The position numbers and the translations under genes are program-made. This document shows positions 2,305 to 58,579 of a DNA stretch of 64,000 bases, piece by piece. This DNA is from Azolla caroliniana (taxonomy: Eukaryota > Plantae > Polypodiophyta). The stretch covers positions 8,246,001 to 8,310,000 of the forward strand of contig JBHGNT010000017.1 in NCBI GenBank assembly GCA_043228905.1. Reading direction: 5' to 3'. Under the pieces are notes generated by a model. The model ran no database searches. It was not told where the DNA came from and saw only the letters and a program-made list of their open reading frames with translations. Every line of letters begins with the position of its first letter. Positions within the stretch are counted from its first letter, which is position 1.

Positions 2305-2753
2305 TGTTACCCGACCGACAAAGGACTTAAAGACCAGAATGTGAAAGGGATTGTTATTCGGAATCTATTTTAATTAAGTAGAATAGATTATAATTGAGTA
2401 GTGAATGGACGGACCAAAATCGGTATGCCGATCCGGATCCGAACCGGTTCCGAACAGGTGCCGATTGGCACCGTTTTGTACGTAGCACCGATGACCTATA
2501 TAAAGGCCCGGTTACAATGTAAAACTTTAACGGAGAATTAATATAAGCTTCTTGTTTTATCTTCACGTATTGATTACTATTCTGTATTAATGGTTATATC
2601 TTACGTGTGTATTAAGTGAATGTCATATTGCTAAGTAGCCAATTAAGTCGGATTAATCGTTGTGTCTTAAGTTATCTCGTCGTAACACCCCTTTGGTGAA
2701 GTGTCCTCCGTAGACACCTGTGTTAGGCCATTGTCCGACCCTAAGGATTAACA
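2305..2753 (+). repeat. Gypsy 5' LTR
   Basis: TGTTACCCG...TTAACA; CCTATATAAAG TATA-like box near 2495; first ~210 bp repeated at 5535-5745. Confidence 0.9.
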
Positions 2754-2760
2754 CAGTTTT

Positions 2761-2770
2761 TGGCGACCAC
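2761..2770 (+). promoter_or_regulatory. PBS, probably tRNA-Arg(TCG)
   Basis: TGGCGACCAC, 7 nt after the LTR; complementary to the recalled plant tRNA-Arg(TCG) 3' end (...GTGGTCGCCA). Confidence 0.7.
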
Positions 2771-2808
2771 GATTCCTGCACAATCGCAACAAACATCGGC
2801 GGGAATGG

Positions 2809-5451
2809 ATGACTAGACCAACGAACGACTCGGTTACGGAGTGAGCAAGGAGACTTGCTGAACAGCTGAGGAAGCGAGAGGCTTTCCAGCAAGCGGCAGA
2901 AGAAATCAGAGCGGATCGCTAATTTTCCAAAGTGATCCGGAAAGTGGCCAAGGAGTCACTTCGTTTACAACAAAACGACTACCCGGACGAAGGAAGCAAC
3001 CTAAGTAGCCTCCGAGAAGTGGAATCCCTTCTCCAGGTATTGGCAGCAGGCGAAGGCGAATCCGAAGCATTTTCGGCATTTGAATCGGGTTCAGACGAGA
3101 AATACAGCGCGAACACAAGAACACAAGATCCCAACAACATCCCCATGTTTGAAACATTAAAGACAAAAATTTTGCATTTCTTCCATAAGGAGATGGTCCA
3201 ACGGGAAATGGTAGGGTTATTTTACAGTATCCGGCAGGAACCAACGGAGAACATTCAACAGTTTGTCCTCCGGTTCCAGCAGATCCACAGTCAGCTCAGC
3301 CGAACACCACCGAAGGAAAAAACAAAGGCCATACTCTTAGGAGCACTCCGGTAACCCTTACGGACAGTGTGCACCGTCATTGATTTCCGCACCAGCAGCA
3401 TAGATCAAGTGATCGACCGAGTTCGGGAAATGGAAAACTCAAGTTCATGGCTAACCATGGGCACACTTCAGCGTCCACTACCGACAGATGAGGACCTCCG
3501 TTTTTGGCAAGCAATTCAATGTACGACATGCCTGAATGCCGGACATTCGATGCTGGAATGCACCATGCATTCCCAATGCTTGCTCTGCCACTCCAGAAGT
3601 CACACAATGGAACGGTGTGAGTATAACTTGTTAAATCGGCAAGCACCACCGATCCGGCAAATTGAACCACGAAGCAACCGGGATGAAGAAGAAGAACGTT
3701 GGCGGCAAGAGGAGTGCTACCAGCCGGCACAAGATGTCTGGTACAGCGATCGAAGAGACGCTTATGACCAGTATGACAGACAGGATAGATACCAGGACTA
3801 TAATGGATAGTACGAGAGATACAACCGGGATCACTCCCCTGGTTACAACCAACGACGGGACGACTATGGCAAGTATGACGACCAGCACCGTCAAGGTTAT
3901 CGAAACAAAAAGAATTTCAACAAGAAACATCATTTCAACAAAAACGGGGGTCATCCACGGGAACCGGAAAAGGGCGCTCCAAGCAGCCAACTGGACCAAA
4001 ACGAAGCACTTACCATTGGACCATCGATCCAAGCACCGGTGACTCCAGTAGATGTACAGAATAAAGAAACATCGGCACCTATACATAACAATAAGACCTC
4101 GGAGACGGAACCAGTCCCAGAGATAGTGGCGGCGCAAGCAAGAGAGCTTGCTGAATTGAGGGATGAACTGGCCGCACAAGAAGCATTATGCACCCGAGAG
4201 AGGAACTTGAAGAAAGCGGCAGAAGAAGAGAAAAGAAAGACTATTGAGAAGCTTCGTCGAGCAGAAGAGAATCTGCGGAAAGGACATCAGGCATATGACC
4301 AGCTGAAGGAGGAGAAAGAGAAGGCGTTGCAAGAAAAGGAGAAGCTGCGATGGATGGCAGAAACAGAGATCGAAAGACTTAAAGAAGAACTCCGTCAACA
4401 AAAGGATCAGGAAAACCGCGCTCGTCGGCAACTCAACCAAAAGCTTAAGCAGAAGACCGATGATTTTGAGCACCTACACCGGGACTACAAGCACTTGGAT
4501 ACGGAGCATAAGAAACAATAGGAGAAGATGGCAGAACTCCGACAGGAGGTGCATCGAGCTGAGACGGCGCTAGCAGAGGAACGGGCTGAAAGAACCACGT
4601 TGTTGGAGGAAGCCGCGCAAGAACGTATGGAGCTCCATAAGCAGCATTATGAAGAGAAGGAAAGAGCAACAATGGTATTGCAGAGGTTGCAGAACACCTA
4701 TGAAAACCAATTGTCACATTACCGGGAGCAGGAGGTGGATACGGTGGCACTGATCAAGCAATTGAAGGACGAACGGCAAGCCGCGGAGGACAAATCGAAG
4801 ATGGGATTGGAGCGGATCCAGTTCATTGTCCATGCATGGAGGAACAAGACCAAACGCTTGATTGACGAAAGCTCTGTGCAATGGTGGGACAAATGGACAA
4901 AGCACACAACCGAGCTCCAGTTGCTAAGGGCAGACGTGGAAAACTGGCAGAAGGATGGCGACGATTGCTACATGCTAACAAAAGAGGACTTCACCGCCAT
5001 GAGAGATGAGTTAGCAGAAGATTTTGTAACTCTGGCGGAGGAACAGTCAGCAATGGTCCGACAATTGGTAGCCTAGCTAGACGATGATCGACTGGATGAT
5101 CAAATCCAGTTTGAAAGCTATGAGCGGACCAGGATACGAAGAGAAGAAACAAAGCAGGCCGCGACCGTCAACCTTAGCGTTGAGGAGCCATCACCGGAGC
5201 AAGGATCGGACGGAGACAAGGCCGGGGCGAGTCAACCGGAGTCAAATCCGGCAGAGCAGCTAATGGAGGAATCACCGCCACAACCGTCGGTACCGGGAGC
5301 CGAACAAATGCCATCAAAGTAGCAATAGTCGGAGGAGCCGGAGCCACAACAACAACAACAACCACAACAACACCCACAACAACCACAACAGCAACAACAG
5401 TCGTAGCAACAACAACAGAGTTCCGAACAACCATTGGATACCCTGGAGTAG
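2809..5451 (+). pseudogene. Fused gag / extra-ORF reading frame with point stops
   Basis: ORFs 2932, 3367, 4039 and 4528 are all in one frame. Gag knuckles (CTTCLNAGH...CLLCHSRSH) are joined to the coiled-coil half of the extra ORF. Confidence 0.75.
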
Positions 5452-5487
5452 AGTATTCTGGATATCTTGGACGAAGGCGAAGGGCCG

Positions 5488-5532
5488 GATAGTGGGATTC
5501 GACGTACAAGGTACTGTCCCACGGGCGTGCCA
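5488..5532 (+). promoter_or_regulatory. tRNA-Arg 3'-end-like motif (antisense PBS) in place of a PPT
   Basis: GATAGTGGGATTCGA-N13-GTCCCACGGGCGTGCCA, then TG, then the LTR at 5535. Confidence 0.7.
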
Positions 5533-5745
5533 TGTGTTACCCGGCCGGCAAAGGAGTTAAAAACCAGAATGTGAAAGGGATTGTTATTTGAAATCTATTT
5601 TAATTAAGTAGAATAGATTATAATTAAGTAGTGAACGGATGGACCGGAATCAGTATGCCGATCCGGATCCGGACCGGTTCCGAATAGGTGCCGGTTGGCA
5701 CCGTTTTGTACGCAGCATCGGTGACCTATATAAAGGCCCGGTTAC

Positions 5746-8116
5746 TGCCACCTCTTGTAATGGAAGTTGCTCCCCCCGCTCAAAACCTGTCTTTGGCAAA
5801 ACAACATCATTACTAGCATCCTCTACAATCAACGGCTCACCAACATCCTCATGTTGCTCCTCTTGTTGTGAGGCACTCTCTTGTGTATCATCATCCATCA
5901 TAGGAATTGGATAAATATCTACTAGGTCACCATCTGAAGAGGTACTTGACCTTTCCGCCTTGTCAATGTCCTCAATGGTTTGGTCTTCGATGAACACTAC
6001 ATCACGACTCCTAATAAGCTTCTTTCCCACATGATTGTAACACCAATAACCAAAATCATCTTGACCATATCCAATAAAAATGCATTGTTTAGATTTAGCA
6101 TCTAACTTCGATCTTTCATCCTTGGGTATATGTACAAAACACTTACACCCAAACACACGTAAGTAATCATAAGAGACATCTTTACCATACCACACTCTAT
6201 TTGGTACGTCACCTTGCAATGTGGTAGTAGGAGATAGATTAATGATATGTGCAACAGTATTCAAAGCCTCACCCCAAAATGATTTAGGTAACCTTGCATC
6301 TGAGAGTAAGCACCCAACTCTCTCAACTAGGGTTCTATTCATTCTTTCGGCCAAACCATTTAATTGGGGAGTCTTAGGAGGGGTTCTTTGATGTTTGATA
6401 CCTTGGTCTCGACAATACACATCAAAAGATCCACAGTATTCGCCAGCATTATCGCTGCGAATACATTTCAGTTTCTTCCCTGTCTCTCTCTCAACAGAAA
6501 CGTGAAACTCTTTAAAAACATTAAAAACTTGATCTTTTGATTTCAACATTCGAACCCAAAGCTTCCTAGAATGATCATCAATGAAAGTAACAAAATAAAG
6601 TGCTCCACCCATTGACCTTACCTTCAAGGGTCCACACACATCAGAATGCACTAGCTTGAGTATACCTTTTTGTCGAAGAGAAGAATGCTTAAAGGAAACC
6701 CTCTTAGCCTTCCCTGCCAAACAATGATCACATGTATCTAACTTCACATCTTTTAAACCTGGTAGGACGTTCGTTTTTGCTAGAAAGTCAAGTCCCTTTT
6801 CACTAATATGGGACAATCTCTTATGCCACAATTTTGAAACATCTTGATTTTCAACTGCATTGACAAAGTTAGTAGAGACAGAAGCTTGCAAAAGATATAA
6901 ACCATTGTGACAACATTTATTTGCTTTCGCAACAATCAAAGAACCCTTACAGATTTTCCACTTACCATTTTGAGACGCATGGTTATAGCCCTCGTCGTCT
7001 AATGTACCGGTGGAGATTAGATCCAATCTAATATCGGGCATGTGTCGTACTTGATGTACAATCAACTTGAATCCTGTGTTGGTTTGCAAGCAAATGGTTC
7101 TTGTGTCGACTACCTTTGCAAATCCATCATTCCCCATCTTCACAACACCATAGTCACCTGGAGTGTGAGATGAGAAAAAATCCCTTCTAGATGTAACATG
7201 GTGGGAGGCACCACTATCAAGAACCCAAGTGGTTTCATGGCTACTTATGTTAACTTCATTGTAACTTGTACATACAACAAGTAAATCATTAGAGGAAGCA
7301 ACATTAACAGAATTGATATTGTCATTCACATTTTTCTTATCTTTCATGTAGTTCGACACTTTATTTTCCTTCTTCCATTTGAAACAATATTTCTTTATGT
7401 GACCTATCTTACCACAAAAATGACAAACTAAATCTTTATATTTAGACTTTGACTTACTTCTACTTCTACCTTTGTTGTTTCGGTCATCACTCTTCTTTTG
7501 GTTTCTTCCTCTATTTTCAGCAACGAAGGCTTCCATGTTTGATGTTGCTCCTTGCGTCCTTCGCCGCATTTCTTCATTTAGAATTCCACTCTTCACAAGT
7601 TCCATTGTCATACCTCCCTTAGGAGCCGCACTAGCTAGAGTAACCCTAAATGTTTCCCATGACTCGGGAAGAGTATTTAGCAACCATAAAGAAAGAACTT
7701 CTTTCAAAGTTTATACCCATGCTAGACAATTGATCAAAACATCCTTGAAATTCATTTAAATGATCTAAAACCGACTTATTTTCTTTATAAGTCAAATGCA
7801 TCGCTTGTTTGAGTAAAAACAACTTATTATTACCGATTCTAGAAGCATATAAGGTTTCTAATTTATTCCACAAAGTCTTTGCATTTGTTTCATTCACAAC
7901 ATGATTCAAGACATTATCTCCTACCCATTGACGAATGAAACCACATACTTGTTCATTTTCAAAATCCCATTCCTCATCATTTTTCTTTTCGGGTTTGATC
8001 TTTGCGAATATCGGTAAATGCATATTTTTAACGAAAACCAAATATTTCATTTTTCCTTTCCATTTTTGATAGTTTGTGCCATTTAAAACAACCATTGTTG
8101 ATGTGTTTGCCTCCAT
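5746..8116 (-). pseudogene. Copia B gag-protease-integrase (frameshift near 7700)
   Basis: LNGTNYQKWK, CHFCGKIGHIKKYC, WVLDSGASHH, LWHKRLSH, HSDVCGP, RSDNAGEY, QLNGLAERMNRTL. Confidence 0.92.
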
Positions 8117-10327: not shown

Positions 10328-12397
10328 CTATTCTTGAGGTGCATTGTCAATGTTAACATCTTGCCCATCATCATCATCTTCTTCAAAATCCTCATTAACC
10401 ATAGTTGCATGTTGTCTTTGCAATAGAAAAAGCCTATCATCATCATCTTCTTTATTAATCATATCCAATGTCACTTCTATACGGCTTGAATCTCTTTTTT
10501 TTACTTTCTTTAATAGACGATGGTTTGTATGCAAGTATACTAGCTTCTCTATATGATCATGACTCAACCTATTTCTCCTCTTAGTGTGTATCAATGAAAA
10601 GGTACTCCAATTTCTCTCCCATGGAGATGCACAAGTACCTTGAGAAAGCACTTGTATCGCAAGTTTACTTAAATTTGGGGTTTCTCCTCCAAATAATTCC
10701 CACCACTTAACACCATCTTTCATTCTAGTAGGATCATTTGAAGGTGGAAGTTGAAAAATACCCTTCTCTTTACTTTTATAAGCATGATACTCATCTAATA
10801 AATTACCTTGCATCTTAATGTCACCATTTGCATATCTCATAATGGTGTCTATCCAACAAGCATTCACCACATTATCAAAAACTTGAACATTTTCCCACCA
10901 AATTGGATGTAAGAGATATCCAATTGCATGTAATGGTGAATGTAACATTTTGCATCTATCCATGCATAATCCTCTAATTTCATCAAGCAACATGTTATTG
11001 ATTCCTTGCATTTTATTTATTTATTCTATCATTCGTCGTGTACATTCATATATCAACCCCATTGTTGCACCTTCTCTATCCGCCAATCACAACACTTTTA
11101 AAATTGGTGAGCATATTTCCACTATCATCTTTACATTTGACCAAAAGGAAGCATTCAATATTATCGAAACTACTTCTTCTGCTTGTTGCGTTTTAGATCC
11201 CTTCCATTGGCACCATTCTTCACTAACTACCATTCTTCTTAAACCACTATACACTCTATCATTGAACAAATTTGATAGCACAATGAAACTATAAGCAAAC
11301 CTTGTAGTAGAAGGCTTCAACAATTCCTTTTTACTAAACTTGCGAAACATTGCAAGCACATATAGCTTTCTTGTGATGAACGTAGTAACCTTCAAACCTA
11401 ATCTCAAAGCATCATTAACCCAAGCACATTTTCCTATATCCTCAAACAACAAATCAAGGCAATGACATGTGCATCGAGTAAAAAATATCATGGGCCACTC
11501 TTTCTCTATCATATGTCCCGTTGCCACACAATTTGATGCATTATCCATGCATACTTGCACAACATTTGTTGGGCCAATTTCAAGAATGGTAGCTTTTAGA
11601 ATATCAAAGATATACTCCCCCGTTTTACATTCTTCACTTGTATCCACGGACCTCAAAAACACTAAACCAAACATTGATGAAGCTAGAACATTAATTATTG
11701 GCCTATTTCTAGTACCTGACCAACCATCACTGACTATAGTGCATCCATATATTTTCCATTTCTCTTTAATGCATGAAAGTTTATCTTCAACAAATTTTAC
11801 TTCTTCATCTAAGTGCCTCTTTCCCAATTGGAAAGAACTTGGTGGCTTATATGACGGACCAACCTTTGCAATTGCTTGAACCATATCATGAAAAAATGAA
11901 CTATCAACCTTAAGATGTGGAATATCCTCTACAAAAAAGAATCTTCTCATTGATTCATCGGCAATTTTATTCAAACTTTTTTGCCAAGAGATTTGTAGGG
12001 ATCCACCAATATTCTCAATTGTCCTCTTCTTACATGATGAAGATGACATGTCAACTACAAATGCACAAGTAGATGGCACAACATTGGCATTAGATATGCT
12101 TACATCGACATTATTCTCACTTTCTGCACTAGAATTTTCATTAGCATTAGTATTTTCATGAGCATCAACATCCGATATCAATTTTTTTATCTCATCTTTT
12201 ATTGCTCCAATGACTTTGCGGCATTTATCCACACCTTGTCCTTTTAGCCCCAAAAGATGGGCTTTAATTCGGTGTGGACCACCAACAAATACATGTTTGC
12301 AATGTTTGCAATGTTTGCATTCATTTATATGCATTCCTTTATCGTTTCTCTTCAAGACAGTAATGTGGTCCCATAAAAAGCTCTTTGGTTTACCCAT
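10328..12397 (-). pseudogene. hAT transposase (BED finger, DUF659-like core, dimerisation domain) with two in-frame stops
   Basis: W..ECKHC..GGPHRIKAHL, CTIVSDGWS, VVQVCMDNASN, CTCHCLDL, TRF, WWELFG..PNLSKLAIQVLSQ..ERNWSTF. The two ORFs are in the same frame. Confidence 0.92.
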
Positions 12398-13269: not shown

Positions 13270-13490
13270 ACTACTCACTCAAAGCTCTCGATTCTCTACA
13301 ATCGAATCTTAGTTACAATTCACGAACACTCAAAGCTCTCGATTCTCTACACTCGACTCTTAGTTATGATTCACGAACACTCAGAGCTCTCGATTCTCTA
13401 CACTCGACTCTTAGTTACGATTCACGAACACTCAGAGCTCTCGATTCTCAGCTCTCAACTCTTAGTTCAGATTCACGAACACTCAGACTC
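13270..13490. repeat. 51-bp tandem repeat (~4.5 copies) in hAT subterminal region
   Basis: CACGAACACTCAGAGCTCTCGATTCTCTACACTCGACTCTTAGTT units; one isolated partial copy near 12533-12565. Confidence 0.9.
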
Positions 13491-13496
13491 TCAAAC

Positions 13497-13955
13497 TGTT
13501 ATCGCTAGGGCCGGACAATGGCCTAACACACGGTGTCCCTTTGAGACACTTCACCAAAGGGGTGTTGCGGTGAGATAAACTTAGACCGAACTATTAATGA
13601 AACCCTAATTGGTTACTAATCAGCAATATCATTAGTCACAATACACGCGTAAGATAGATTTCACTTAGCACGGAACGGTAATTAACTTGATTAAGATACA
13701 AAACAACAACACTCTATTAATTATCCGTTAATGATTACAATCTAACCGGGCCCTTTTATAGGTCTCCGGCTCTAGGTACAAACCGGTGCCAACTGAGAAC
13801 CGGCTACAAACCGGTCCGGATCTGGATCGGCATACCGATTCCGGTCCGTCTATTCGCTTCTCAAAATATCCTTCTAAATATTATAGATAATCAGCTCTCA
13901 ATTATTAATTATCCCCCTTTTCCCATTCTGGACTTCCCTTGCCGGTCGGGTAACA
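13497..13955 (-). repeat. Gypsy 3' LTR
   Basis: Direct repeat of 22992-23450 with TG...CA ends. Confidence 0.95.
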
Positions 13956-13957
13956 CA

Positions 13958-14002
13958 TGGCACACCCGTGGGACAGTACCTTGTATGTCGAATCCCACGA
14001 TC
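13958..14002 (-). promoter_or_regulatory. tRNA-Arg(TCT) 3'-end-like motif / second PBS at the 3' LTR
   Basis: + strand reads LTR end TAACA, CA, TGGCACACCCGTGGGAC-N13-TCGAATCCCACGATC; no adjacent purine tract on the element strand. Confidence 0.75.
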
Positions 14003-14008
14003 CGGCCT

Positions 14009-17000
14009 TCATTCTTCCTCCCAAATGTGTAGAATGCTTTGATCTAAGGGTTCCAATGGTTCCTTGGGAAGCTGTTCAGTCGTCTGTTGTTGTTGTTGTT
14101 CCTCCTCCTACTGTTGCCCCGGCTTCTGTTGTTCCTGCGGCTGTGGCTGCTCTTGTTGTTGCTCCGGCTCCAACTGTGACTGCTTTTGCTTGACTTCAGT
14201 TTCCTGCGGCTCTATTGATCTTACCAGCTCTTCCTCCTTTTCTGGCTCTACTGGTCTTGGCGTCTCCTGGTGTTGTTGTCCTGCATGCACAGCTTCTTGC
14301 AGATGACCTTCCTTTAGCGGCTCCTCCTACTACTGGTTTTCGATGTGCTAGTTTCCGTCTTCCGGTTGCGCCTCCAGAGGTATGTTTGCCTTCTCCTCCT
14401 GAGTTCCATACGACTGGCTTGCCCCCGTTCCGGCTTCATTCAACACCTACTCCGAAGACTGCTCTTCATCACTAATGTTGATCGTCGCAGTTCTTCGGAC
14501 CACTTTGTGTCGTCGCCATTCTCGTTCATACCGCTCGAGCTAGAGTTGTGTATCCAGCTGGTCATCATCCAGCTGCTCCACCAATTGTTTCACTGCCGCC
14601 GATTGGTCCCCAGCTAATTATAGGAAGTTATCTGACAATTCCTCCCTTATGGCAACAATGTTTTCCTCGTCCAATTTATAGAAATCGTCGTCGTCCTTCC
14701 GTCGGTTCTCCGCATCCGATCACAGCAATTGTAACTCCGCCGCCTGCTTAGCCCATTGAGACCATTATTGAGCCGAACTATCTTCTACCAGTCTTTTCAT
14801 CCGGTCTCTCCATGCTAGTACAATGTCCCAGATCCATCTTCAACTTGTTCTCCGCGGCCTATTTTTCGTCCTTCAATTGTTTGATCAGATTCGCGGTTGC
14901 CACTTCTTGGCTTCTGTAGTGCATGAGATGGGTCTAATAGGTCGTCTGAACTTTGTTCAGAGCCATTGTAGCGCACTCCGTTGCCTCCAAGTACTGTCGG
15001 GTCAGCTCTACCTGTTCCTTCGCTGCTTCCGCTAGTTGTTTTGCTGCTTCCGCTAGTTGTTTTGCTGCTTCAGCTCCCTTCGATTGTTCCTCTACCAAGG
15101 CTGCCACAGTCCGGTTAACTCCATCATGAAGTTCCAGTAACTTCTCCTACTGCCGGTCACTTTCGGTGATCAATTTCTTGTGTTCCGCATCCAAGTGTTT
15201 GTGATCCCGGTGCAGCCGATCAAAGTCCTCCGTTTTCTGTTTCAGTCGTTGGTTGATCAGACGGTGAGCATGGTCTTCCCGATCCTTTTGTTGCCGGAGT
15301 TCTTCCTTGAGTCACTCGATCTCTACTTCCGCCGAGCGCTGGAGTTTGTCCTTTTCCTGTAGGATTCTTTCTTTTTCTTCCTTCAGCCGGTCATATGCTT
15401 GATGACCTTTTCTCAAGCTTTCCTCTGCTCATCGGAGGTTGTCGACCATCTTCCTTTGTTCCTCCTCCGCCGCTTTTTTCAATTCCCGCTCTCTGGCTCG
15501 TAAGGCTTCTTGTGCTGCCAGGTCTTCCCATAATGTGGCGAGCTCTTGTGGTGGCGTTTTATTAGTATCCAGGCCTACTTCAGTCACCGAGGTCTTATTG
15601 TTCTGTAAAGTTACTGGAGCCACCGGTTCCAATTGATGTGGTCCTTCTATTACCAACTTGGTCATTTCTGTTCTGGCCTTCTCTATGTCTTCCTCCATGC
15701 TCCAGATTCTTGACTAGGCCTTCTCTAATTCCTCGGTTGTGGCTAGCAACCGGTCTTTATGCCCTCTCTCTTCCGCTTCTAATTGGCAGACGACCCCAGT
15801 CACTTGTTTTGCTATCCATCGTAGCCATTGACTGTCAGTGCCTTGTTGTCGTGTCGGTTCTGGTCGTGGGATGGCTTCTTCACTGGCCATGAGCCTACTA
15901 TGGACGGTTAGTCAAGCAGCCACTCCGGTTCTGGCTGTTGCTGCTGCGGCGGCGATGCCGGCAATTCAATGACTGGTTCTTGATCCACCGATACTGCCGT
16001 GTCTTGGCCCGTTGATTCTGTTATGTCCTGCCGCACCGATTGCTTTGCCACCAATTCGTGTTGAACCAATTCTGATGCCCTCCTTGGCTGCAGCTCCTCA
16101 AGGAGGAGTTCTAGTATACTGTCCTCCATCGGGTTTGATTTCTCCCCTTTGTGGCCCTTGTCACTTGTTTGTCGACGCCGTATCAGAGTCTCGGTAGGCT
16201 CGTCTTCTTGCTCTTCTTCCTCTAAGGTCTTACTATTTATTAACACCATCAAGGGGTCCTGCCCCTACGGTTTGTCTGGTTGTTGTTCTACTTGTTGTCC
16301 CGTCTGGCGCAACTTGATTTTCACAGGTCTCACCGGGGTGTTCACTAATGCCTCCTCTCTGCCAACTGCTTCCAATTAGGCCGCTCCTTTGCCTTTTGTG
16401 AAGTGTCAGCCTCCTTCCAACCTATCGCCTGGGTAGCCATGAGTTACTGCCGTTTTGAAGTTGTTTTGGGGGTCGATTCTATCAGTCTTCCCCGCTTCCT
16501 TTGTTTCATGGGCTCCACCAGTGGTGCTAACAGAGTGAGCCATTGCGCCACAGTTGTCCACATCTCTTTGCCATCTTTTATTGAGACAATGGCAGCGCTC
16601 AGGCCGTCAGCGATCATTACCGGCCAATCCACCTGTACTCCCTCGTAGGTGGCTATGATCAAACCGGCTCTATTCTTGGGCATGGCCGGTGGTCGGGGGT
16701 ATACATGACCATACTCGTGGAGTACCCGAGCAATTTCCCGAAACAATAGGTCTTTGCCACATTGTGTGCGGTACGCCTTGCTGCCCAGTGAGTATTCTCC
16801 GAAATACCTCGTCAGCAGCTCCTGTGAAGGGTTGTCGATCGAGTATATTCCCCCTTCCGGTAAGCTGGTTAGGGCTCGGATGGCTTCCTCGGTGATGACC
16901 TTCGTGTCAATGTCTTTGACGACATTTTCCGCATCTCCATGTGGCGGTGCTTCGACTATCCTCAAGAATCCCTCCAGATTGTGTTGCTTAAGCCATTTCT

Positions 17001-17031
17001 TGGCCGCTTCTGAGAGCACCATGCATTCCAT
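14009..17031 (-). pseudogene. Degraded extra ORF (N-terminal plant-transposon-like domain, coiled coil, Q/E/P tail)
   Basis: 16444-17031 aligns by eye with the N-terminus of the 884-aa ORF; later pieces (LAAQEALRARERELK) match its coiled coil. Confidence 0.85.
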
Positions 17032-17523
17032 GTCGTCGTTAGAGTTGGTAGGTTGTGGTAAGATTGGTGCGCCTATGTGTTCTACTTGCTCTCACCTGAT
17101 CACTCGTAATCGCATGTGTGCGCTGAGATCTCTGTGTTCGTGAAATGAAAGGGACTCTACGCGGTAGAGGTTTTCTTTCTCCATGCGTGGCACCTTTTCT
17201 TGATTCCCGCGCATGCATGTCTTGTACTAATATAGCAGTCAGTTGACACATGGTGCGTTTTTAAAGAGGCTTTAATTAGCCACCCACCACACCTTTTCAA
17301 AGTGCCCAAAGTGCCCAAAGTGCCCGTTCGCTCCTCGCCTATACATGATGACTTTTCTTTTTCCTTTTTTTCTTTTTTCTTTTTGCAAGTTGAGTTTTTA
17401 GTTAACCGGAAGCACCGGGTCCATATCCCAGTTTTTCCCCATATTCACGTTTGCCGGCCACCTATTTGTCATTATCCAGTAACACCAGCTCCGCCTGATT
17501 GTCGGGTACTTGTTTACTGCTTC

Positions 17524-20500
17524 CTACTGTTGCATCAGCCTTTGTCTGCTCAAATGGATTCTGTGGCATAGGTTCACAATATGGTTTGAGTCGAAACCCA
17601 TTGACCCATTTGCCCATTATCTCACCGGCGAGCGTTCCGAGCTAGCATGAACCGTTGAATTCCCGTGTTATCCAATACGGTCCGGTCCACTGGAACCGTA
17701 GCTTTCCCGGCATCTGACCCATCCGGGTCTGGAACACGAGTACCAGCTTGCCGATCCAGAACATCTTCTCATTGCCCTTCCGGTGCCGATCGACAAACGC
17801 CTTCCTTCGTTGCTACTCCAGTTCCAATTGCATGAGACTCGCGATCCGATGCTCCTCGAGTTCGCATAGTGCGGCTAACCAGATTTTTTCCGATTCCTTT
17901 TCACTTAGTCGTTCTCTAACATGTATTCGCAAACTCGAAACCTGAAATTCAATAGGCATTACTGCTTCCAACCCAAAAGCTAACCGGAATGGTGTTGACC
18001 GGATACTCGTTTTGTATGTCGTCTGGTATGCCCATAGTGCACTATTCAGCTTCGTGTCCCAATTGGTCTGGTTTTCATTGACGATCTTTCGCAAGATGTT
18101 TTGGAGCGTTTTGTTTGTGGATTCGGCCAATCCATTGGCCTATGGATAATAAGGGGTATTGCGCTTGTGTACCACTGCATAGAATGTTGTTAAGCTCTCC
18201 ACTACTTGACCGAGAAAATGTCTGCCTTGGTCGCTAATTAACTCAATCGGGCATCCATATCGGCACAAGATGTACTCATATAAGAACTTTGTTGTTGATG
18301 TCGCAGTGTTGTCCCGCAAAGCCTTGGCTTCTACCCACTTGGTGCAATAATTTGTGGCGACTATAACATATCTGTTGCCGGTTCTCATTACCGGAGGTTT
18401 AAACGGCCCAACGAAGTCCAGCCCCCATTTCTGAAATGGCTCTAAGGGTAGCACCAGCTAGTTAGGCATCCTTGCCTGTTCTGTTGGTTGGCCCATCCGT
18501 TGGCATAAATCACAGTCTTTCGCGTATCGAACCGAGTCCTTCAGTGTCGTCGGCCACCATAGCCCGTTGTGCCATATCTTTCTTGCCGTAGTGTCCCCGG
18601 CATAGTGCCCTCCGGCAACACCGCAGTGCACTTCTCGTAATATTGTGTCCTTTTCGTCGCTTCGCACTACTCGCCGCCATATGCTATCCGCACCTTTATG
18701 GTACAAGGTGTCTTGTAGTAGACAAAAATGTTGGCTTTGTACCGTTAACCGCTTCCGCTCATCCTGGTTCATCTCCTTCGGTGGTAGTTCCGTGCTTAGG
18801 AATTGATGCATGTTGGTTAGCCACTTGTCTTCGTCGACTATCGTGCTATCTGTTGCCGTTTCTACTGTTACTTTAAACAACTCGGCATCCGGAAACTCAT
18901 CTGGGACTCCATCACCGGTCTCGCCGAAGTCTAACCGGTTCAGATAATCGACAACCGCATGTTGTATTCCCGACCAGTGATATATTTCGAACTCAAACTC
19001 TTGTAGCAACAATGTCCATCGGGCCAACTTACCGGTGAGCAATGCCTTTGAGACCAAATATAATAGCGTTGAGTGGTCGACATGAAATGAAAATTTCCTT
19101 CCCAATAAATAGTGCCTGAACTTGAATCATCCCTAAGGCTTCTCTTTCCGTTGTTGAATAATTTTGTTCCGCCTGGGATAGCTTCCGGCTGACATAATAA
19201 ACCGGTCGGTACCATTTCGGTTCAATCAATTGCATTAGTGCGCTGCTGATTGCTATGTCGGACGCATCGACGAACACATGGAACTCTTTTGACCAGTCCG
19301 GTGGTTGCACCACCGGCGCTTGTGACAGTTGTACTTTCAGTGCCTGGTAAGCCTTATCCTCCGTATTTGTCCATTGAAACGGTGTCTGGTGAACCGTGGC
19401 ATGCAACGGTGTAGCAAGATTGGCCAAATACCAGAGTATCCAATTATGCCACCAGATTTGCCCTAGAAACTGACTCAAAGCTTTAGCCGTGGATGGTGCC
19501 GGTGCTTCTAAGATTGCTTTGACCTTATCGGGGTCTACTGCAATCTCGTCCTTACTGACGATATGGCCTAGCAATGCACCGCTTGTTACTCCGAACACAC
19601 ACTTTGCTGGATTCAGGCTTAACCGATAACTCCTACATTTCTCAAGACATAGTCGGAGGTGTTGGAGATGTTCTCCTTCTCGGCTATACACGGCAATGTC
19701 ATCCAGGAATACCTACATGAATGTCGGGATGAACTCGCCAAATACTTCCATGATTATTCGTTGGAAGGTCGCCGACGCGGTCTTGAGCCCGAACATCATT
19801 ACCACTACGACGAAGACTCCCCATTCGGTGACGAACACCGTCTTGTCTTGGTCGTCGAGGTGCATCCTTATTTGATTGTTGTCGTTGAAACCGTCTAGGA
19901 AGCTATACACTTCATGACCGGCTACCGCGTCCAACACTCCATCCATAAATGGAAGTGGAAAGGCATCGGTCACTGTTGCCACATTGAGTTTCCGGTAGTC
20001 GATGCACACCCGGATCTTACCGTTCTTTTTCGGCACGACGACTATGGGACTTAACCATGTAGCTTTTTTCACTAGTTGGATAAAACCAACCCGTAGCAAC
20101 TTGGCAATTTCCTCTTTGACCTTTGCCGCATAGTTAGGGTTCATCCGGTAACGCCGTTGTGCTATCGGTTTGGCATCCTTATTGAGATGTATCTGGTGTT
20201 GGTACAACTGAGGATCCAGCCCCCGCGTGTCTTCATAGGACCAAGCGAATACATCCCAGAATTCCTTTAATAAAGTGATCATCGCCGTCTTGTTGTCCGG
20301 TGACATTTCCTTAGCAATATGAACCGGTCTTGCATCGTCTCCAGTTCCTAAGTTCACTTCTTCTAACTGGGATGCTTTCACGTGTTGGGATACCGCCATC
20401 TCCCTCTCCAGAGCTTCCTGTGCTTGTCGTAGTTCTCTGATAGCTTCCTTTTCCGGTTCCTCGTCGGCATCATCCGATTGTGTTATATATGGTGACACTA

Positions 20501-21300
20501 CTTTTAGCCATGGGCGGCCCAACAACAACGGGTGAGCCCCTTGTGCATTGAGCTAGAGAACCACCGCCGAAATGCGGAATGCGTGTCCTCCGATAGTTAC
20601 GTCTAAATCCCGTATCAAACCAGTAGGTCTTACCGAACTTGTATCTGCCATCCAGAGCCAAAACGGGCAAGGCTCCCATTCCAGGATTCCTAGGGTATTA
20701 CAAGTCCGTAGACTAATCACGTTCACGCCCGATCCTCCGTCCACAATCGTTCATGGTAGTTCTCGTCGTTTGACGATGGCGATGATTGCCGGACTGTTTG
20801 TGTCAACCACTGTTGGCCCTTCTTCCGGATTTGAGAAGAACGCAGGAGTCGGCAACGGGTTTGATGTGGTCATTCTTGATGTCAGCCCTTCTGTAAACCG
20901 GGGCACTAGCCGTAATAACCAACCCAATGGCAGTGTAATTTGACATTCTTGTAACGCTTGCCATGTTGGGTTTTTAAGGCTGAATCATGTTGGTGGCCTC
21001 TTCCAGTTTGTCCTTTTGTTGTTCAAGCTTAGCCACATTCTGCTCATTTGCCTTCTTCACCCACTCTGTGGCTTGCTTTCGGATTGCCTCCTGTGTTTCC
21101 CACTCCGTTGTTTTGCCTTTTGACCTGGTGGTGACTTGTTGTATGTCGACGACTTCTGCTACCACTATATTTATTGTTGGTCATTTCTCGTAACTTTTAA
21201 CCGAACATTGATTACTATAATGTCCTTCTTGCTGGCAATAGTAGCAGTATGGTTTCTGGGTGTTGCTAGATTCGACGTTCACTCCGGTACCCGGTTGAGG
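17524..21300 (-). pseudogene. Gypsy pol: protease, RT, RNase H, integrase (frameshifted)
   Basis: IVDGGSGVN, LLGRPWL, WLSPIVVVPKKNGKIRVCIDYRKLN, FLDD, VDASD, YSTTEREAL, H..GHY..CDLCQR, WGLDFVGP, ISDQG, WTGPY. Confidence 0.92.
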
Positions 21301-21302
21301 TC

Positions 21303-22969
21303 CTATTGGTGGTCGGTTAGGTGCTTGGCCTTGGTCCGGTTGGGTACTTGGTGTGCCCTTGTCTGGTTGCCATTGGTGGTCCTCCTTTCTAGTGTTCCAT
21401 TTTTTGTTGAAGCGTTTTTTGTTCCGGTAACCCTATCGGGGCCGGTTTTCATAATTGCCTTGATCCTCCCTTCGTTGGTTGTAACCGGGGGAGTGATCCC
21501 AGTTGTATCGCTCATATCGATCACTGTTGTAATCCCGGTAGCTATCTTGCCGATCTTGGTCGTGAGTGTCTTTTCTGTCGTTGTACCGGACATCTTGCGC
21601 CGGCTGGTAACGCTCATCTCGTCGTCAACGTTCTTCTTCCTCCTCCCGGTTACTTCGGGGTTCGATTTGCCTTACCGGTGTCGCTTGTCGCTTGCCGGTT
21701 TAGCAAGTTATATTCGCATCGGTCCATGGTGTGCGCCCTAGAATGGCATAACATGCACTGTGTCTGCATGGTACATTCTATTGCTGAGTGCTCGGCATTG
21801 AGACAAGTCGTACATTGTATAGCTTGCCGAAAACGTGGGTCGTCTTCTGTCGGTAATGTACGTTGGAGTGCCCCCATTGTTAGCCATGCGCTTGTTTTCT
21901 TCATCTCCCTGACCCGTTCTATGACTTGGTCGATCGTGTTGGTGTGGAAATCGATCATTGCGCACACCGTATGCAGGGGTTCCCTGAGTGCGGATAGGAA
22001 TATTGCTTTAGCCTCTGCTTCCGATGGTGCCCGATTTAGCTGGTTGTGCATTCGTTGGAACCGGATTACGAATTGCTGAATCGTTTCCGTAGGTTCTTGT
22101 CGTATAGTGTAGAATAGGCCGACCATCTCCCGCTGATCCACCTCCTTGTTGAAGAACTGTAAAAATCTGGTTTTTAAGTTCTCAAACGTCGTGATGGTGC
22201 CGGGAGAGTGCGTCAAGCGCCATTGTGTGGCTGGTCCTTCCAAGGTCATGTCAAACTCTGCAATCTTCGAGCGTTCTGCTTCGGCGGCGGTCAAGCGTTG
22301 CGACACATGGTTTGCTTCCCATGTTTGTAGAAATGCATAGATATGAGCTTCTTCATCCCGATCATCCCAGTAGTTGGGATATTGGAACGACATGTCGTCG
22401 TCCAGTGTCGGAACGCGGGCTAGTGGTGTCAGAGGTCTCCCCTCTTCTTTCGGTGTCAGAGGTATTTCCTCCTCTTCTTTCGGTGTTTCACGTGGCGGTG
22501 TCAAAAGTTGATCCGCCACTTGCTGGTCTGGGGCTTCCAGTTCCGTTAACTCTAGTTCTGGTGTCAGCAAGGTATCCGACTGCTCGTCCTCCGGTCCGTC
22601 TGGGGTGTCGTGGTTGCTACGGTAATTCAAATGGGCGATGCATTCGCCGTCCGAATCCGATTTGAGGGCTGAGAACGGTTCCGAATCGCCTTCCCCTATT
22701 GCTAATGCTTGTAGAATGGATTCTGCGTCCCGGAGACTGCTCAAGTTGCTTCCTTTGTCCGGGTGGGGAGTCTGATGCTCGCGGAGTGACTCCGCGGCCA
22801 CTCGCCGGATTACTTTGGAAAATGATTGATCCACACGGATCTCTTCTACCGCCTGCTGGAAAGCCTCTCGCTTCCGCAATCGTTTGGCAAGTCTTCTTGC
22901 TCGCTCCGTAATCGGGTCGTTCATTGGTCTAGTCATCCATTCTCGTCGTTGTTCGTTGCGTTTGTGCAA
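21303..22969 (-). pseudogene. Gypsy gag
   Basis: Retrotransposon-gag-like FENLKTRFLQFF...QEPTETIQQFVIRF and two CCHC knuckles. Confidence 0.85.
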
Positions 22970-22974
22970 GAATC

Positions 22975-22984
22975 GTGGTCGCCA
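22975..22984 (-). promoter_or_regulatory. PBS TGGCGACCAC (tRNA-Arg(TCG)-like)
   Basis: Same sequence and 7-nt spacing as at 2761. Confidence 0.7.
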
Positions 22985-22991
22985 AAAACTG

Positions 22992-23450
22992 TGTTATCGC
23001 TAGGGCCGGACAATGGCCTAACATAGGGTGTCCCTTTGAGACACTTCACCAAAGGGGTGTTGCGATGAGATAAACTTAGACCAAACTATTAATGAAACCC
23101 TAATTGGTTACTAATTGGCAAGATCATTAGTCACAATACACGCGTAAGATAGATTTCACTTAGCACAGAACGGTAATTAACTTGATTAAGATATAGAACA
23201 ACAACACTCTATTAATTATCCGCTAAGGATTACAATCTAACCGGGCCCTTTTATAGGTCTCCGGCTCTAGGTACAAACCGGTGCCAACCGACAACTGGCT
23301 ACGAACCAGTCCGGATCTGGATCGGCATACCGATTCCGGTCCGTCCGTTCGCTTCTCAAAATATCCTTCTAAATATTATAGATAATTAGCTCCCAGTTAT
23401 TAATTATCCCCCTTTTCCCATTCTGGACTTCCCTTGTCGGCCGGCTAACA
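22992..23450 (-). repeat. Gypsy 5' LTR
   Basis: Direct repeat of 13497-13955. Confidence 0.95.
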
Positions 23451-23595
23451 CAGACTCTTAGACTCGTCACTCCTCACAACCCATCAGAAAAAAACCCCCA
23501 AAAAAACCAAACGAATATCGTGTATCATACGCATACGTTTGCAAATGTTCGAGTATGTCCAGTAAATTGGACGTACGTGAATATTAAGAACTATG

Positions 23596-54494: not shown

Positions 54495-57400
54495 TGTTGA
54501 GCGGCAAGCTCAACCGGATTTGGATTGGTTGAATAAGCCTAAGCCGGATTTGTGGGCTGGTGAGCTGGGGAGTTGGTTATCTGGATCAAGCAGTAACCGG
54601 AAGCCAAGTAGCAGCTAGTCTACTAGGGAGTTAATATCTCGTAGTTAGTGTCAGATGCTCGTGTGAGCATTGAAGTACACCGTACTTTTGTCAGTCCGGA
54701 TGGACTTGTATAAAAGTGTTCACTGAACACATACGATGTACAGACTGAGCAGTATTTTTTGAATTGAGTTTCAGTGTGCTCTCTCTCTCTCTCTGTCTCT
54801 CTCTCTCTTGCGTACTGTTAAGCTCTCCATTAAACCTGTTTTTTGCTTTCTGTTTTCTATTGCTTCCGCACACTATTTGTTTCTACATGGTATCAGAGCG
54901 CGAGGGTTGAAGACCTCTGCGGTCGACATTCGCTTTCGCAAGACAAACCCTATAGGTTGTGAGAACAGAACACTAGAAAAAGAAAATGGACAAAGGAATG
55001 GCTAGCTCGCTCCCGGTGGAGAAGCTCGACATATCCAACTACGCATCTTGGTCATACAAGATGCACCAGTACCTGCTTGGGCATGGTTACTAGAGCTATG
55101 TCGACAGAGCTAACGACACAGCACTTGATGCGGCACACAAGGACTTCCCGGTGTGGGAACAATTGACAAGCAAAGTGATGTACTACTTTGTGTCCAGTGT
55201 CGGAGACCAGTTGCTGAGCCAGGTCCGAGATGCCAAGACGCCAAAAGAGGCTTGGGGAAACCTAAAGAAGGTGTTCGCCGCAAGCACTACAGCCCGGAAG
55301 CTGCAACTCTGACAGGAGTTGAGGAATGTCCGGCAGAAGGACATGTCAGTGGCTGATTACACGGCCCGAATCAAAGAGATCTGTGACTCGCTTGCCTCTA
55401 TCAACGTCACAGTAGAGGATGACGAGATGGTAGAACTCTGTCTTGGGGGCCTGACGTCTAAGTTCCAACCTTTCCGGACAACAATATGTACGAGGGAGAA
55501 TATACCGTCATTTTTCGACTTACAATCGATGCTCCTTGTAGAGGAGAACCATGCCGGTGCGTCAACAAGTGCACCCACCGACAGTCGGATGCTGTACACG
55601 GAGGCGGATCGGTCCTGTGGGTGTGGTGGATGAGGCGGGTCGGCACGCACTGGAGACGGCCGGCAAGAGCAGGAAAGACGACACAGAGACCGTGCTGACA
55701 GCAGTCCCGGGACCTCCACAACCAGGGGGAGTCAAGGTGGCGCTGGAGGCCGGCAAGACAAATCCACCACGGAATGCTGGTACTGTGACAAAAAGGCCGA
55801 TAGAGAAAGTGAGCGCTAGAAGAAGCGCGCCAATTCGGACAGATCTGGATCCGGCAAAACTAGTCGGGAGAACCGACAAAGCTCGCACTACGCGCAAGGA
55901 TCGAAAGGATCCGGAACCAGGAAGATCGGTAAGGGGCCAGCCTTGGTGATGAAGCACGAGGCAAATTCGATGAAGAAGACCACTTCCAAATCAAAGGAAG
56001 TATGGTATGTTGATTCCGGTGCATCAAATCACATGACGAACCACAAAGACTGGTTCTCCTTCCCGGAGAAACCATAGATGACACTCCTCACCCAATCGTG
56101 CATATTGGTGAAGTCACTTTGAGCCACGTCGGACAGAGGGGGAAGCTGATGAATGTATTACACGTTCCGACTATCATAAAGAACCTGGTGTCGGTCGGTC
56201 AGATCGTCGACCAGGGAATGCAGGTGCGGTTTACGCACCTCGGGTGCTTCATCGAGGAGGAGGGCCAGATTATTGTGCAAGGGCGCAAAGACGGGAGGAT
56301 GTTCATCCTCGACACCAATGACATCGGCACCGCTTTATTAGCCAAAGGATTGAAGATTGAATCGGACATTGATCTCTGGCACAAGTGGATCGGCCACGTC
56401 AATTACCGGAGGCTTCAAGAACTGCAAACGAAACAAGTTGTTTTCGGTTTGCCGAAGTTCAGTGGCCGGAAGGCCCAAGTATGTGAAGCTTGTCAACTTG
56501 GGAAGCAACACCGGCTTCCATTCCCCACCGAACGAAACCGTAGCCGTAACAAGCTCGACCTTATTCATTCGGATGTATGGGGACCGGCACAGAACGTGAG
56601 TCTTGACGGGAGTCGATACTTCGTCTCCTTCATCGACGACTATAACCAACACACATGGATCTACCTCATTGAGCGGAAGAGCGAAGTATTCGACTATTTC
56701 CGGAACCTCCAAAGCATGGTGGAACGGGAATTGGAGAGGAAGATCAAGTGCCTATGGTTAGATGGCGGAAAAGAATATTTTTCCGGCCAATTCAATAGTT
56801 ATCTGCAACAAACAGGAATTCGGAGAGAGTTCAGCTGCAGATACACACCGGAGCAAAACAATGTGGCCAAAAAGAAGAACCGGTCGCTTGTCGACGCGGC
56901 AAGGGCAATGCTGGAAGAGAAGAGCATGCCCCATTTCTACTGGGTGGAGGCGGTCCGGACGGCCGTCTACATCCAAAACTGGATCGGTGACAAGGTGTCC
57001 GCACATGAGCTGTATTTCAGGCGCAAGCCGAATTTGAGACACCTTCGGATTTTCGGCAGCATAGCATATGTGCATGTGCCAGATGAGAAGCGGAGGAAGT
57101 TGGATGCAAAATCGGAGAAGTGCATCCTCATCGGCTACTCACATGAGCAAAAGGGGTATAAGTGTTATAACCCTCGGACGAAGCAGGTCCGAGTTAGCCG
57201 GGATATTGAGTTTGATGAGACGGCATCATGGTATGCATTACTGGCTCTGACTTCTGACCCCGACCTGATACTAAAGGATGAGGCTAGTGAGCCAAAACTG
57301 GTCCAGATAGAAGATGATGAATCCGAGACTCAAGAAGAGAGTCCAGAATCATTTCGGTTGAGTGGGCCGAATGAGAGACTAGGTCAATCCAACTAGTCAG

Positions 57401-58529: not shown

Positions 58530-58567
58530 TGGCACGCCCGTGGGACAGTACCTTGTACGTCGAACCC
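58530..58567 (-). promoter_or_regulatory. tRNA-Arg 3'-end-like motif / second PBS at the 3' LTR
   Basis: + strand reads TAACA, CA, TGGCACGCCCGTGGGAC-N13-TCGAACCC. Confidence 0.75.
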
Positions 58568-58579
58568 TTCTCGGCCCCT

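Follow-up and report, generated by a model that had tools for sequence, protein, structure and literature searches.

Introduction

Reverse transcriptase (RT) stops at the methylated A58 of its primer tRNA, hence the 18-nt length of the minus-strand primer-binding site (PBS), and the 18 nt 3′ of A58 correspond to the span of the 18-nt 3′ CCA tRNA fragments. In hepadnaviruses, the plus strand is primed by a translocated capped RNA oligomer cut from the virus's own pregenomic RNA. The element Ty3 is said to possess a bipartite 5′-3′ PBS, in work attributed to Gabus et al. (EMBO J 1998), in which a 3′ sequence complementary to the minus-strand primer tRNA reportedly aids initiation. Among retroviruses and LTR retrotransposons, such as Ty3 and HIV-1, the common plus-strand mechanism is priming from a polypurine tract (PPT) (review PMC3185511). 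Sequence derived from tRNA is also present in the Helenus TRIMs, where a tRNA-like part inside the LTR acts as a pol III promoter and a normal PPT is kept (Kojima 2024, PMC10886601). The REXdb survey typed PBSs, not PPTs (Neumann et al. 2019, PMC6317226).

Here, we describe a tRNA-like block next to the 3′ LTR of a Ty3/gypsy family in a window of 64,000 nucleotides, by which we mean the whole stretch of Azolla caroliniana DNA that was analysed. Like a PPT, the block directly precedes U3, at a point where integrase removes 2 nt, and it presumably has the same role of defining the left end of the DNA; unlike a PPT, it is 47% purine and copies a tRNA 3′ end with CCA, and the proposed primer would come from the host and not from the genomic RNA. 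With the 18-nt minus-strand PBS it shares the same tRNA unit, positions 59-76 with CCA included, at 2 nt from an LTR edge. However, the block belongs to the opposite strand and the opposite LTR, and its template would be DNA; the tRNA does not rewrite it with every round of replication, in keeping with an inherited one-base deletion. As in the bipartite PBS of Ty3, the genomic RNA of a gypsy-type element has tRNA-related sequence towards its 3′ end, but the block is in tRNA sense, abuts the LTR and, in the window copies, corresponds to another tRNA than the 5′ PBS. The Helenus TRIMs are likewise LTR retrotransposons with tRNA-derived sequence, whereas the window block lies outside the LTR and is absent from the 5′ LTRs. 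The hepadnaviral plus-strand primer is also not a polypurine tract and is also placed by short sequence identity, but it is derived from the virus's own pregenomic RNA and not from a tRNA, in another genome organisation. Finally, the Athila-like OTA elements (PMC6317226) share with the block-bearing clade the order gag-RT-RNase H-integrase, the lack of a chromodomain and of a second RNase H, a large ORF 3′ of pol and a PBS that is not of tRNA-Met; the clade differs in lacking a PPT at the LTR and is so far represented only in this host and in metagenome assemblies.

Results

The junction at the 3′ LTR

A preliminary description of the window had noted, at 13956-14002, an unusual sequence before the 3′ LTR of an element on the minus strand, and this observation was confirmed in both sequence and coordinates. 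The junction itself, GTCCCACGGGTGTGCCA followed by TG and TGTTAC, is borne out at 13974-13955 on the minus strand, with the start of the LTR set by LTR alignment and target-site duplication (TSD). The features of the element that carries it, hereafter copy 3, are as follows:

13497..13955, minus strand: 3′ LTR, TGTTAC...GATAACA, from direct repeats and LTR alignment
13956..13957, minus strand: spacer TG, 2 nt between CCA and the 3′ LTR, from the sequence
13958..13974, minus strand: 17-nt block GTCCCACGGGTGTGCCA, equal to tRNA-Arg(UCU) positions 59-76 (CCA included) minus one C
13975..14007, minus strand: upstream tRNA-derived part, comprising GGCCGG, GAT-GTGGG-A-TTCGA (tRNA ~44-58) and a 13-nt insert directly after A58
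14006..14022, minus strand: purine-rich run, 16/17 purines, ~50 nt upstream of the 3′ LTR
13975..22969, minus strand: internal region, decayed, with gag, RT, RNase H and integrase pieces, ~3.8 kb without a recognised domain and a Gln-rich end
22970..22984, minus strand: candidate 5′ PBS TGGCGACCACGATTC, after the 7-nt spacer CAGTTTT (22985-22991)
22992..23450, minus strand: 5′ LTR, with 96% identity to the other LTR in the 300-nt repeat core

The full LTRs were seeded by direct repeats at 13497-13796 and 22992-23291 (96% identical), and in the LTR-LTR alignment the similarity stops at TGTTA at the start and at ...TAACA at the end. The TSD agrees at 4 of 5 positions (CAAAC at 13492-13496 vs CAGAC at 23451-23455), and the LTR ends are thus fixed by the alignment together with the duplication. 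Pfam domains of gag, RT, RNase H and integrase occur in this order, in pieces, on the minus strand; the element therefore reads in the minus direction, with 13497-13955 as its 3′ LTR.

Along the minus strand, the purine run (14022-14006) is followed by GGCCGG, GATCGTGGGATTCGA, the 13-nt insert, GTCCCACGGGTGTGCCA, TG and the LTR start TGTTAC at 13955. Immediately 5′ of the insert this strand reads GGATCGTGGGATTCGA, and GTCCCACGGGTGTGCCA occupies 13974-13958 after it. On the plus strand, 13950-14007 consists of GTAACA (the LTR end), CA, TGGCACACCCGTGGGAC, the 13-nt stretch and TCGAATCCCACGATCCGGCC. The complement of the block, TGGCACGCCCG... (TGGCAC...), lies 2 nt off the LTR and represents a candidate plus-strand primer site. 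A PBS can be recognised by a complement of at least 11 nt to a tRNA 3′ end, CCA included, at 0-5 nt from the LTR edge, and the candidate site has this form. Together with TGGCGACCACGATTC at 22984-22970 on the minus strand, the block gives the element a PBS-like site at both ends, in agreement with the preliminary description.

At the 5′ end, TGGCGACCACG follows a 6-7-nt spacer in three elements and is the candidate 5′ PBS; no tRNA with a matching tail was present among the fetched loci. The 5′ PBS varies by lineage, and the 3′ block corresponds to Arg(UCU) throughout. The spacer between the 5′ LTR end (...AACA) and the PBS reads CAGTTT(T) at 22985-22991 and 2754-2760 of the window and at 2316-2321 of contig L125, and the relatives L127 and L128 have the usual 2-nt spacer (CT). 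With a spacer of this length, integrase would have to remove 6-7 extra bases from the right end of the DNA copy. The tRNA-like block was not present in the 5′ LTRs compared and, since the 5′ LTR is not preceded by it, the plus-strand DNA of this family must begin at the TG after CCA.

Identity of the block

Metagenome contigs were scanned with a pattern of the block (T-loop start, CCCAC, an optional base, GGGYGTG), and the first 80 loci were analysed. Among these, 26 matches were located inside tRNA genes, 24 of them in tRNA-Arg(UCU) and 2 in tRNA-Trp, the tRNA reference being metagenome contigs and one retro-copy. The earlier proposal of a match to the 3′ end of tRNA-Arg(TCT) with a one-base gap is upheld by these 24 matches and by the 17-nt block ending in CCA. 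Eukaryote-type Arg(UCU) genes end in ...GATTGTGGGTTCGAGTCCCACCGGGCGTG, with T instead of the last C in some. Compared with them, the window block represents tRNA positions ~44-76 with three changes, namely an extra A, the 13-nt insert after A58 and the loss of one C from CCCACC. Its last 11 nt, CGGGCGTGCCA with CCA included, equal the tRNA exactly in copy 1, copy 2, L001, L008 and L124, and copy 3 shows one mismatch in this part (GGGTGTG vs GGGCGTG). Over all three lineages, the 18-nt tail matches the tRNA at 15-17 of 18 positions; the chance of at least 15/18 is 3e-7 per site. Judged by its sequence, the block reproduces the 3′-terminal 18 nt of tRNA-Arg(UCU), CCA included, in sense orientation and is conserved, with one C fewer in the window subclade.

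A tRNA gene or a known RNA was ruled out, as ARAGORN found no tRNA genes in the window and Rfam gave no match for the block, even when 121 nt were searched alone. L008, a contig from the same assembly series as the family relatives, contains a retro-copy of an entire tRNA-Arg(UCU), its CCA encoded in the DNA, to which the Rfam tRNA model assigns 71 bits. In this 1.3-kb sequence the tRNA copy occupies 1190-1265, and the block is located on the opposite strand at 713-760, ~430 nt away, followed by TG and the LTR. L008 is a small element in which both inner ends are from the same tRNA.

Further copies and conservation

With up to 3 mismatches allowed, the 17-mer occurs three times in the window, against 0.02 occurrences expected by chance. 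The sites are 5516-5532 (plus), 13958-13974 (minus) and 58530-58546 (minus), and in every case TG and the start of an LTR come next. The features of the two further copies are:

2305-5745, plus strand: copy 1, a 3.2-kb derivative, with 5′ LTR at 2305-2753, spacer at 2754-2760 and PBS at 2761-2775, the same PBS as in copy 3
5483..5532, plus strand: block of copy 1, with TG at 5533-5534 and the 3′ LTR from 5535
58530..58579, minus strand: block of copy 2, directly after an 884-aa ORF, with the LTR from 58527 downward

The internal region of copy 1 contains no long ORF. In copy 2, the extra ORF (58580-61234, minus strand, 884 aa) terminates directly ahead of the block; its end is rich in Gln, and Pfam recognises no domain in it. 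Seven homologues with 51-92% identity were found, in metagenome assemblies only, and this ORF presumably corresponds to the additional 3′ ORF that Athila-like elements carry. Additionally, the block stands 2 nt before an LTR in four metagenome contigs, and the TG+TGTT junction is present in L001, L124 and L125. Contig L125 runs from the block through the whole LTR into CAGTTT, TGGCGACCACG and gag, and the LTR of L124 ends in ...ATAACA. The segment 1800-2640 of L125 carries the extra ORF, block, complete LTR, PBS and gag on one contig, an arrangement that reflects either two tandem elements sharing one LTR or an assembler walk through the repeat. The contigs of L002, L003, L123 and L126 stop short of the 3′ LTR, the junction gave no match in viral contigs, and no RNA run was found to contain the element.

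The succession of CCA, two variable nucleotides and the TG of the LTR was observed in 8 of 8 instances from three lineages. The spacer bases differ among the lineages (TG, GG, AG), a variation expected for two bases that are removed by integrase. As the LTR begins two nucleotides after CCA, the plus-strand primer would have to end in ...CCA-3′.

The identity comparison covered six instances from three subfamilies. Mean pairwise identity reached 96% in the last 17 nt and 92% in the preceding 13 nt, with 29-62% in the flanks; the stretch 3′ of A58 is common to all three lineages, and the sequence upstream drifts. Furthermore, Logan contigs of four public runs, representing one organism (two studies), a second species and a leaf metagenome, were mapped to 13497-14500. 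Summed contig depth at 13939-14006 was 15-30x that of neighbouring bins in all four runs. Only positions 13964 and 13986 differ from the window in most contigs; both are CpG sites at which copy 3 has a decayed letter. At 13964, ~94% of the contig depth in one run carries the other letter (C on the element strand), so the T of GGGTGTG is private to copy 3. A covariation of T/C in GGG(C/T)GTG with host tRNA variants was considered and rejected, given that the T of copy 3 is private and lies in a CpG and that L127 and L128 are old copies. Two more depth peaks occur inside the LTR in all four runs, at 13803-13870 and 13497-13564. Both are LTR modules that occur in many families; one is located near the centre of the LTR and the other at its end towards the PBS.

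Relatives and classification

More distant elements were searched for with the RT-RNase H-integrase protein of L123, which is 86% identical to the copy 3 pieces. The sequences before the 3′ LTR in four relatives, with the identity of their pol, are:

L127, pol 60%: ...GCTCCACCAGGTGTGCCA, AG, then TGTTGG at the 3′ LTR; tRNA tail 15/18, ungapped
L128, pol 56%: ...GCCCAGCCGGGTGTGCCA, GG, then TGTTGG at the 3′ LTR; tRNA tail 16/18, ungapped
L129 (Riccia sorocarpa), pol 45%: GAGAAAAGGGG then CA before the 3′ LTR; normal purine tract
L130 (Calypogeia fissa), pol 47%: AAGTAAAGGAGTAAA before the 3′ LTR; purine-rich tract

Neither the one-base deletion nor the 13-nt insert is present in L127 and L128, and the boundary in L128 is confirmed by its own 5′ LTR. 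The two liverwort elements, L129 and L130, have identical LTR pairs and clean target-site duplications, and no LTR pair was detectable in L131 (pol 48% identical).

In a maximum-likelihood tree, the block-bearing pol sequences form one clade (SH-aLRT 100). Outward from it follow liverwort and fern elements, seed-plant Athila-like elements, sequences with a second RNase H and, outermost, the chromoviruses. The nearest named kin of the block clade are liverwort and fern elements, with a position beside the seed-plant Athila-like group. Direct LTRs with TG...CA ends, a 5-bp TSD and the order gag-RT-RNase H-integrase place the family in Ty3/gypsy, and the intact relative L123 has the order RT, RNase H, integrase. 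No chromodomain was found in the block-bearing clade, and no second RNase H (PF13456 or PF00075) in the copy 3 pieces, the L123 pol or the extra ORFs of L123, L127 and L128. From the missing chromodomain, the ORF 3′ of pol and the RT-RH-INT tree, the family can be classed as an Athila-like non-chromovirus (OTA). The Tat lineage, to which the preliminary description had pointed, is not supported, as no archaeal RNase H was found, sequences with an archaeal RNase H occupy a separate branch, and the clade groups with Athila-like and non-seed-plant elements.

Purine content upstream of the 3′ LTR

Purines make up 47% of the 15 nt that precede the spacer in the window and 47-60% across the block-bearing elements, compared with 73-80% in Riccia and Calypogeia, and no polypurine tract abuts the 3′ LTR in the block-bearing elements. 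The best purine window, with 80-93% purines, is located at -52 to -65 in the window copies, L001, L125 and L128; no good purine run was found upstream in L008 and L127. The absence of a polypurine tract, as first described, therefore holds for the position beside the LTR and not for the region ~50-65 nt upstream, where most members keep a displaced run. The LTR boundary truly lies beside the block and not further upstream by the purine tract, a position reproduced in copy 1, L125, L124 and L128 and supported by the TSD.

The displaced run is possibly a relic of the ancestral polypurine tract. The simplest history we infer is an insertion of ~30-50 nt of tRNA between the ancestral purine tract and U3.

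Folding and pairing

No common fold was detected in the 50 nt ending in CCA: z ranged from -1.8 to +0.5 against shuffled sequences, and single-sequence folds differ by lineage. A minihelix-like fold formed by GGCCG and the 3′ end is predicted for types A and B (copy 1, -20.9 kcal/mol, z -1.8). A shared tRNA-like fold was rejected, as no fold beats the shuffled sequences and the GGCCG/3′-end pairing occurs only in these two types. In the stem of the 13-nt insert, one compensatory pair change was observed (GTAC/GTAC in the window vs GGAC/GTCC in L008), which is a single event. The predicted duplex with the tRNA tail has -35 kcal/mol (RNA parameters), with 17 bp and one bulged C, and the 11-nt 5′ PBS has -21. 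Conserved sequence without a common fold favours pairing with a trans-acting RNA over structural mimicry. A 5′-3′ pairing of the PBS region with the block was also considered; copy 3 has a match of 7 nt that copy 1 and L001 lack, and this match was judged to be due to chance.

Discussion

Priming of the plus strand

The reading that we favour, and to which we give about an even chance, is that the plus strand is started from host tRNA-Arg(UCU), or from its 18-nt 3′ CCA fragment, paired with minus-strand DNA. RNase H would clear the genomic RNA and expose the TGGCACGCCC... site on the minus-strand DNA, and the tRNA or its fragment would pair with this site. RT would then extend the tRNA primer into U3-R-U5, and RNase H would remove the primer afterwards, as with the minus-strand primer. 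Such pairing would yield the CCA end without a special RNase H cut. Extended to the whole clade, the proposal states that polypurine-tract priming was given up and that both DNA strands are tRNA-primed, the plus strand via tRNA-Arg(UCU) or the 18-nt 3′ fragment; comparison of the sequences leaves this broader claim finely balanced between true and false. The block may have been captured when RT, between the former purine tract and U3, changed to a packaged tRNA as its template, and this capture would have pushed the tract ~50 nt upstream. As the site would be inherited via the genomic RNA and never re-copied from the tRNA, a one-base deletion could persist while selection keeps the pairing. 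Against tRNA priming stand the 1-nt deletion relative to the tRNA that the window subclade keeps, the 13 further conserved nucleotides upstream, which tRNA pairing does not explain, and the purine run still present upstream in most members. We know of no precedent in LTR elements for tRNA priming on a DNA template.

The main rival has the same geometry and places the primer in cis. The genomic RNA's own CCA-ended stretch would survive RNase H and prime the plus strand in the manner of a PPT, which we consider rather unlikely, and we are similarly doubtful that the tRNA-like sequence was kept because the element's RT/RNase H is adapted to handling tRNA 3′ ends at the RNA-DNA junction. A cis primer would explain why the one-base deletion persists and, better than tRNA priming does, why the 13-nt insert and its small stem are conserved, and a second packaged tRNA would be unnecessary. 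However, it needs an unexplained, precise RNase H cut after CCA in a mixed-sequence hybrid, and no feature that would direct such a cut is known; the three lineages have no common fold, and the shared 18-nt tRNA tail is what tRNA pairing would select. The chances are smaller still for a function of the block at the RNA level, with its adjacency to the LTR as a by-product of capture. The roles that might then apply, themselves quite improbable, include 3′-end processing of the extra-ORF message by tRNA enzymes, transport, packaging and 5′-3′ pairing. Consistent with such a role are the GGCCG minihelix-like fold of types A and B and the mutual complementarity of the whole-tRNA PBS and the block in L008, but the fold is neither significant nor common, the Rfam tRNA model finds nothing in the block, and the window copies lack the complementarity between 5′ PBS and block. 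The exact spacing of two nucleotides after CCA in three lineages would also be left unexplained, and a plus-strand primer would still be needed.

The purine-rich window of most members would fit priming from the displaced run, 50-65 nt upstream, with the tRNA-like tail trimmed before or during integration, and the 6-7-nt 5′ spacer suggests that the integrase may trim more than 2 nt. We regard this as very unlikely, considering that L008 and L127 are without a good purine run, that integrases are not known to remove ~50 nt, and that a copy of a tRNA tail ending in CCA 2 nt off the LTR would have no explanation. A misplaced LTR boundary or a chance match is effectively refuted. Copy 3 is decayed and its 5′ flank ends in TG, which blurs the boundary by 2 nt, but the same boundary is found in copy 1, L125, L124 and L128 and a TSD is present; the match has a chance of ~3e-7 per site, and the junction occurs in many contigs.

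If tRNA priming is correct, it would be the first known case of LTR retroelements starting their plus strand without a PPT and a natural exception to PPT priming, in which the second primer is also obtainable from the host. It would furthermore tie 3′ tRNA fragments to a second step of retroelement replication. The elements contain a built-in marker, as CCCACGGG in the element vs CCCACCGGG in the tRNA separates a self primer from a host primer. In the full-text searchable literature, no description of a tRNA-tail plus-strand site was found, also when searching by sequence; many subscription papers lie outside it, and a prior description is possible. For annotation, the block clade will be mis-scored or overlooked by LTR finders in which a PPT is obligatory.

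Other features of the window

Copy 3 is located within a tandem array with a period of 51 bp (13276-13496), and the sequence from 23451 resembles the same repeat unit. In L128, an array with the same 51-bp period lies inside the element at 4532-4990. An ORF of 436 aa at 11087-12397 (minus strand) encodes a DUF659 protein (hAT-transposase-related), and a weak DUF659 ORF is found near the relative in L131. Copia-type ORFs (gag/integrase/RT) were observed at 5650-7707 (minus), 56098-57396 (plus) and 61962-63185 (plus). The first of these is situated at the point (~5745) where the 3′ LTR of copy 1 stops resembling its 5′ LTR, and the last interrupts copy 2.
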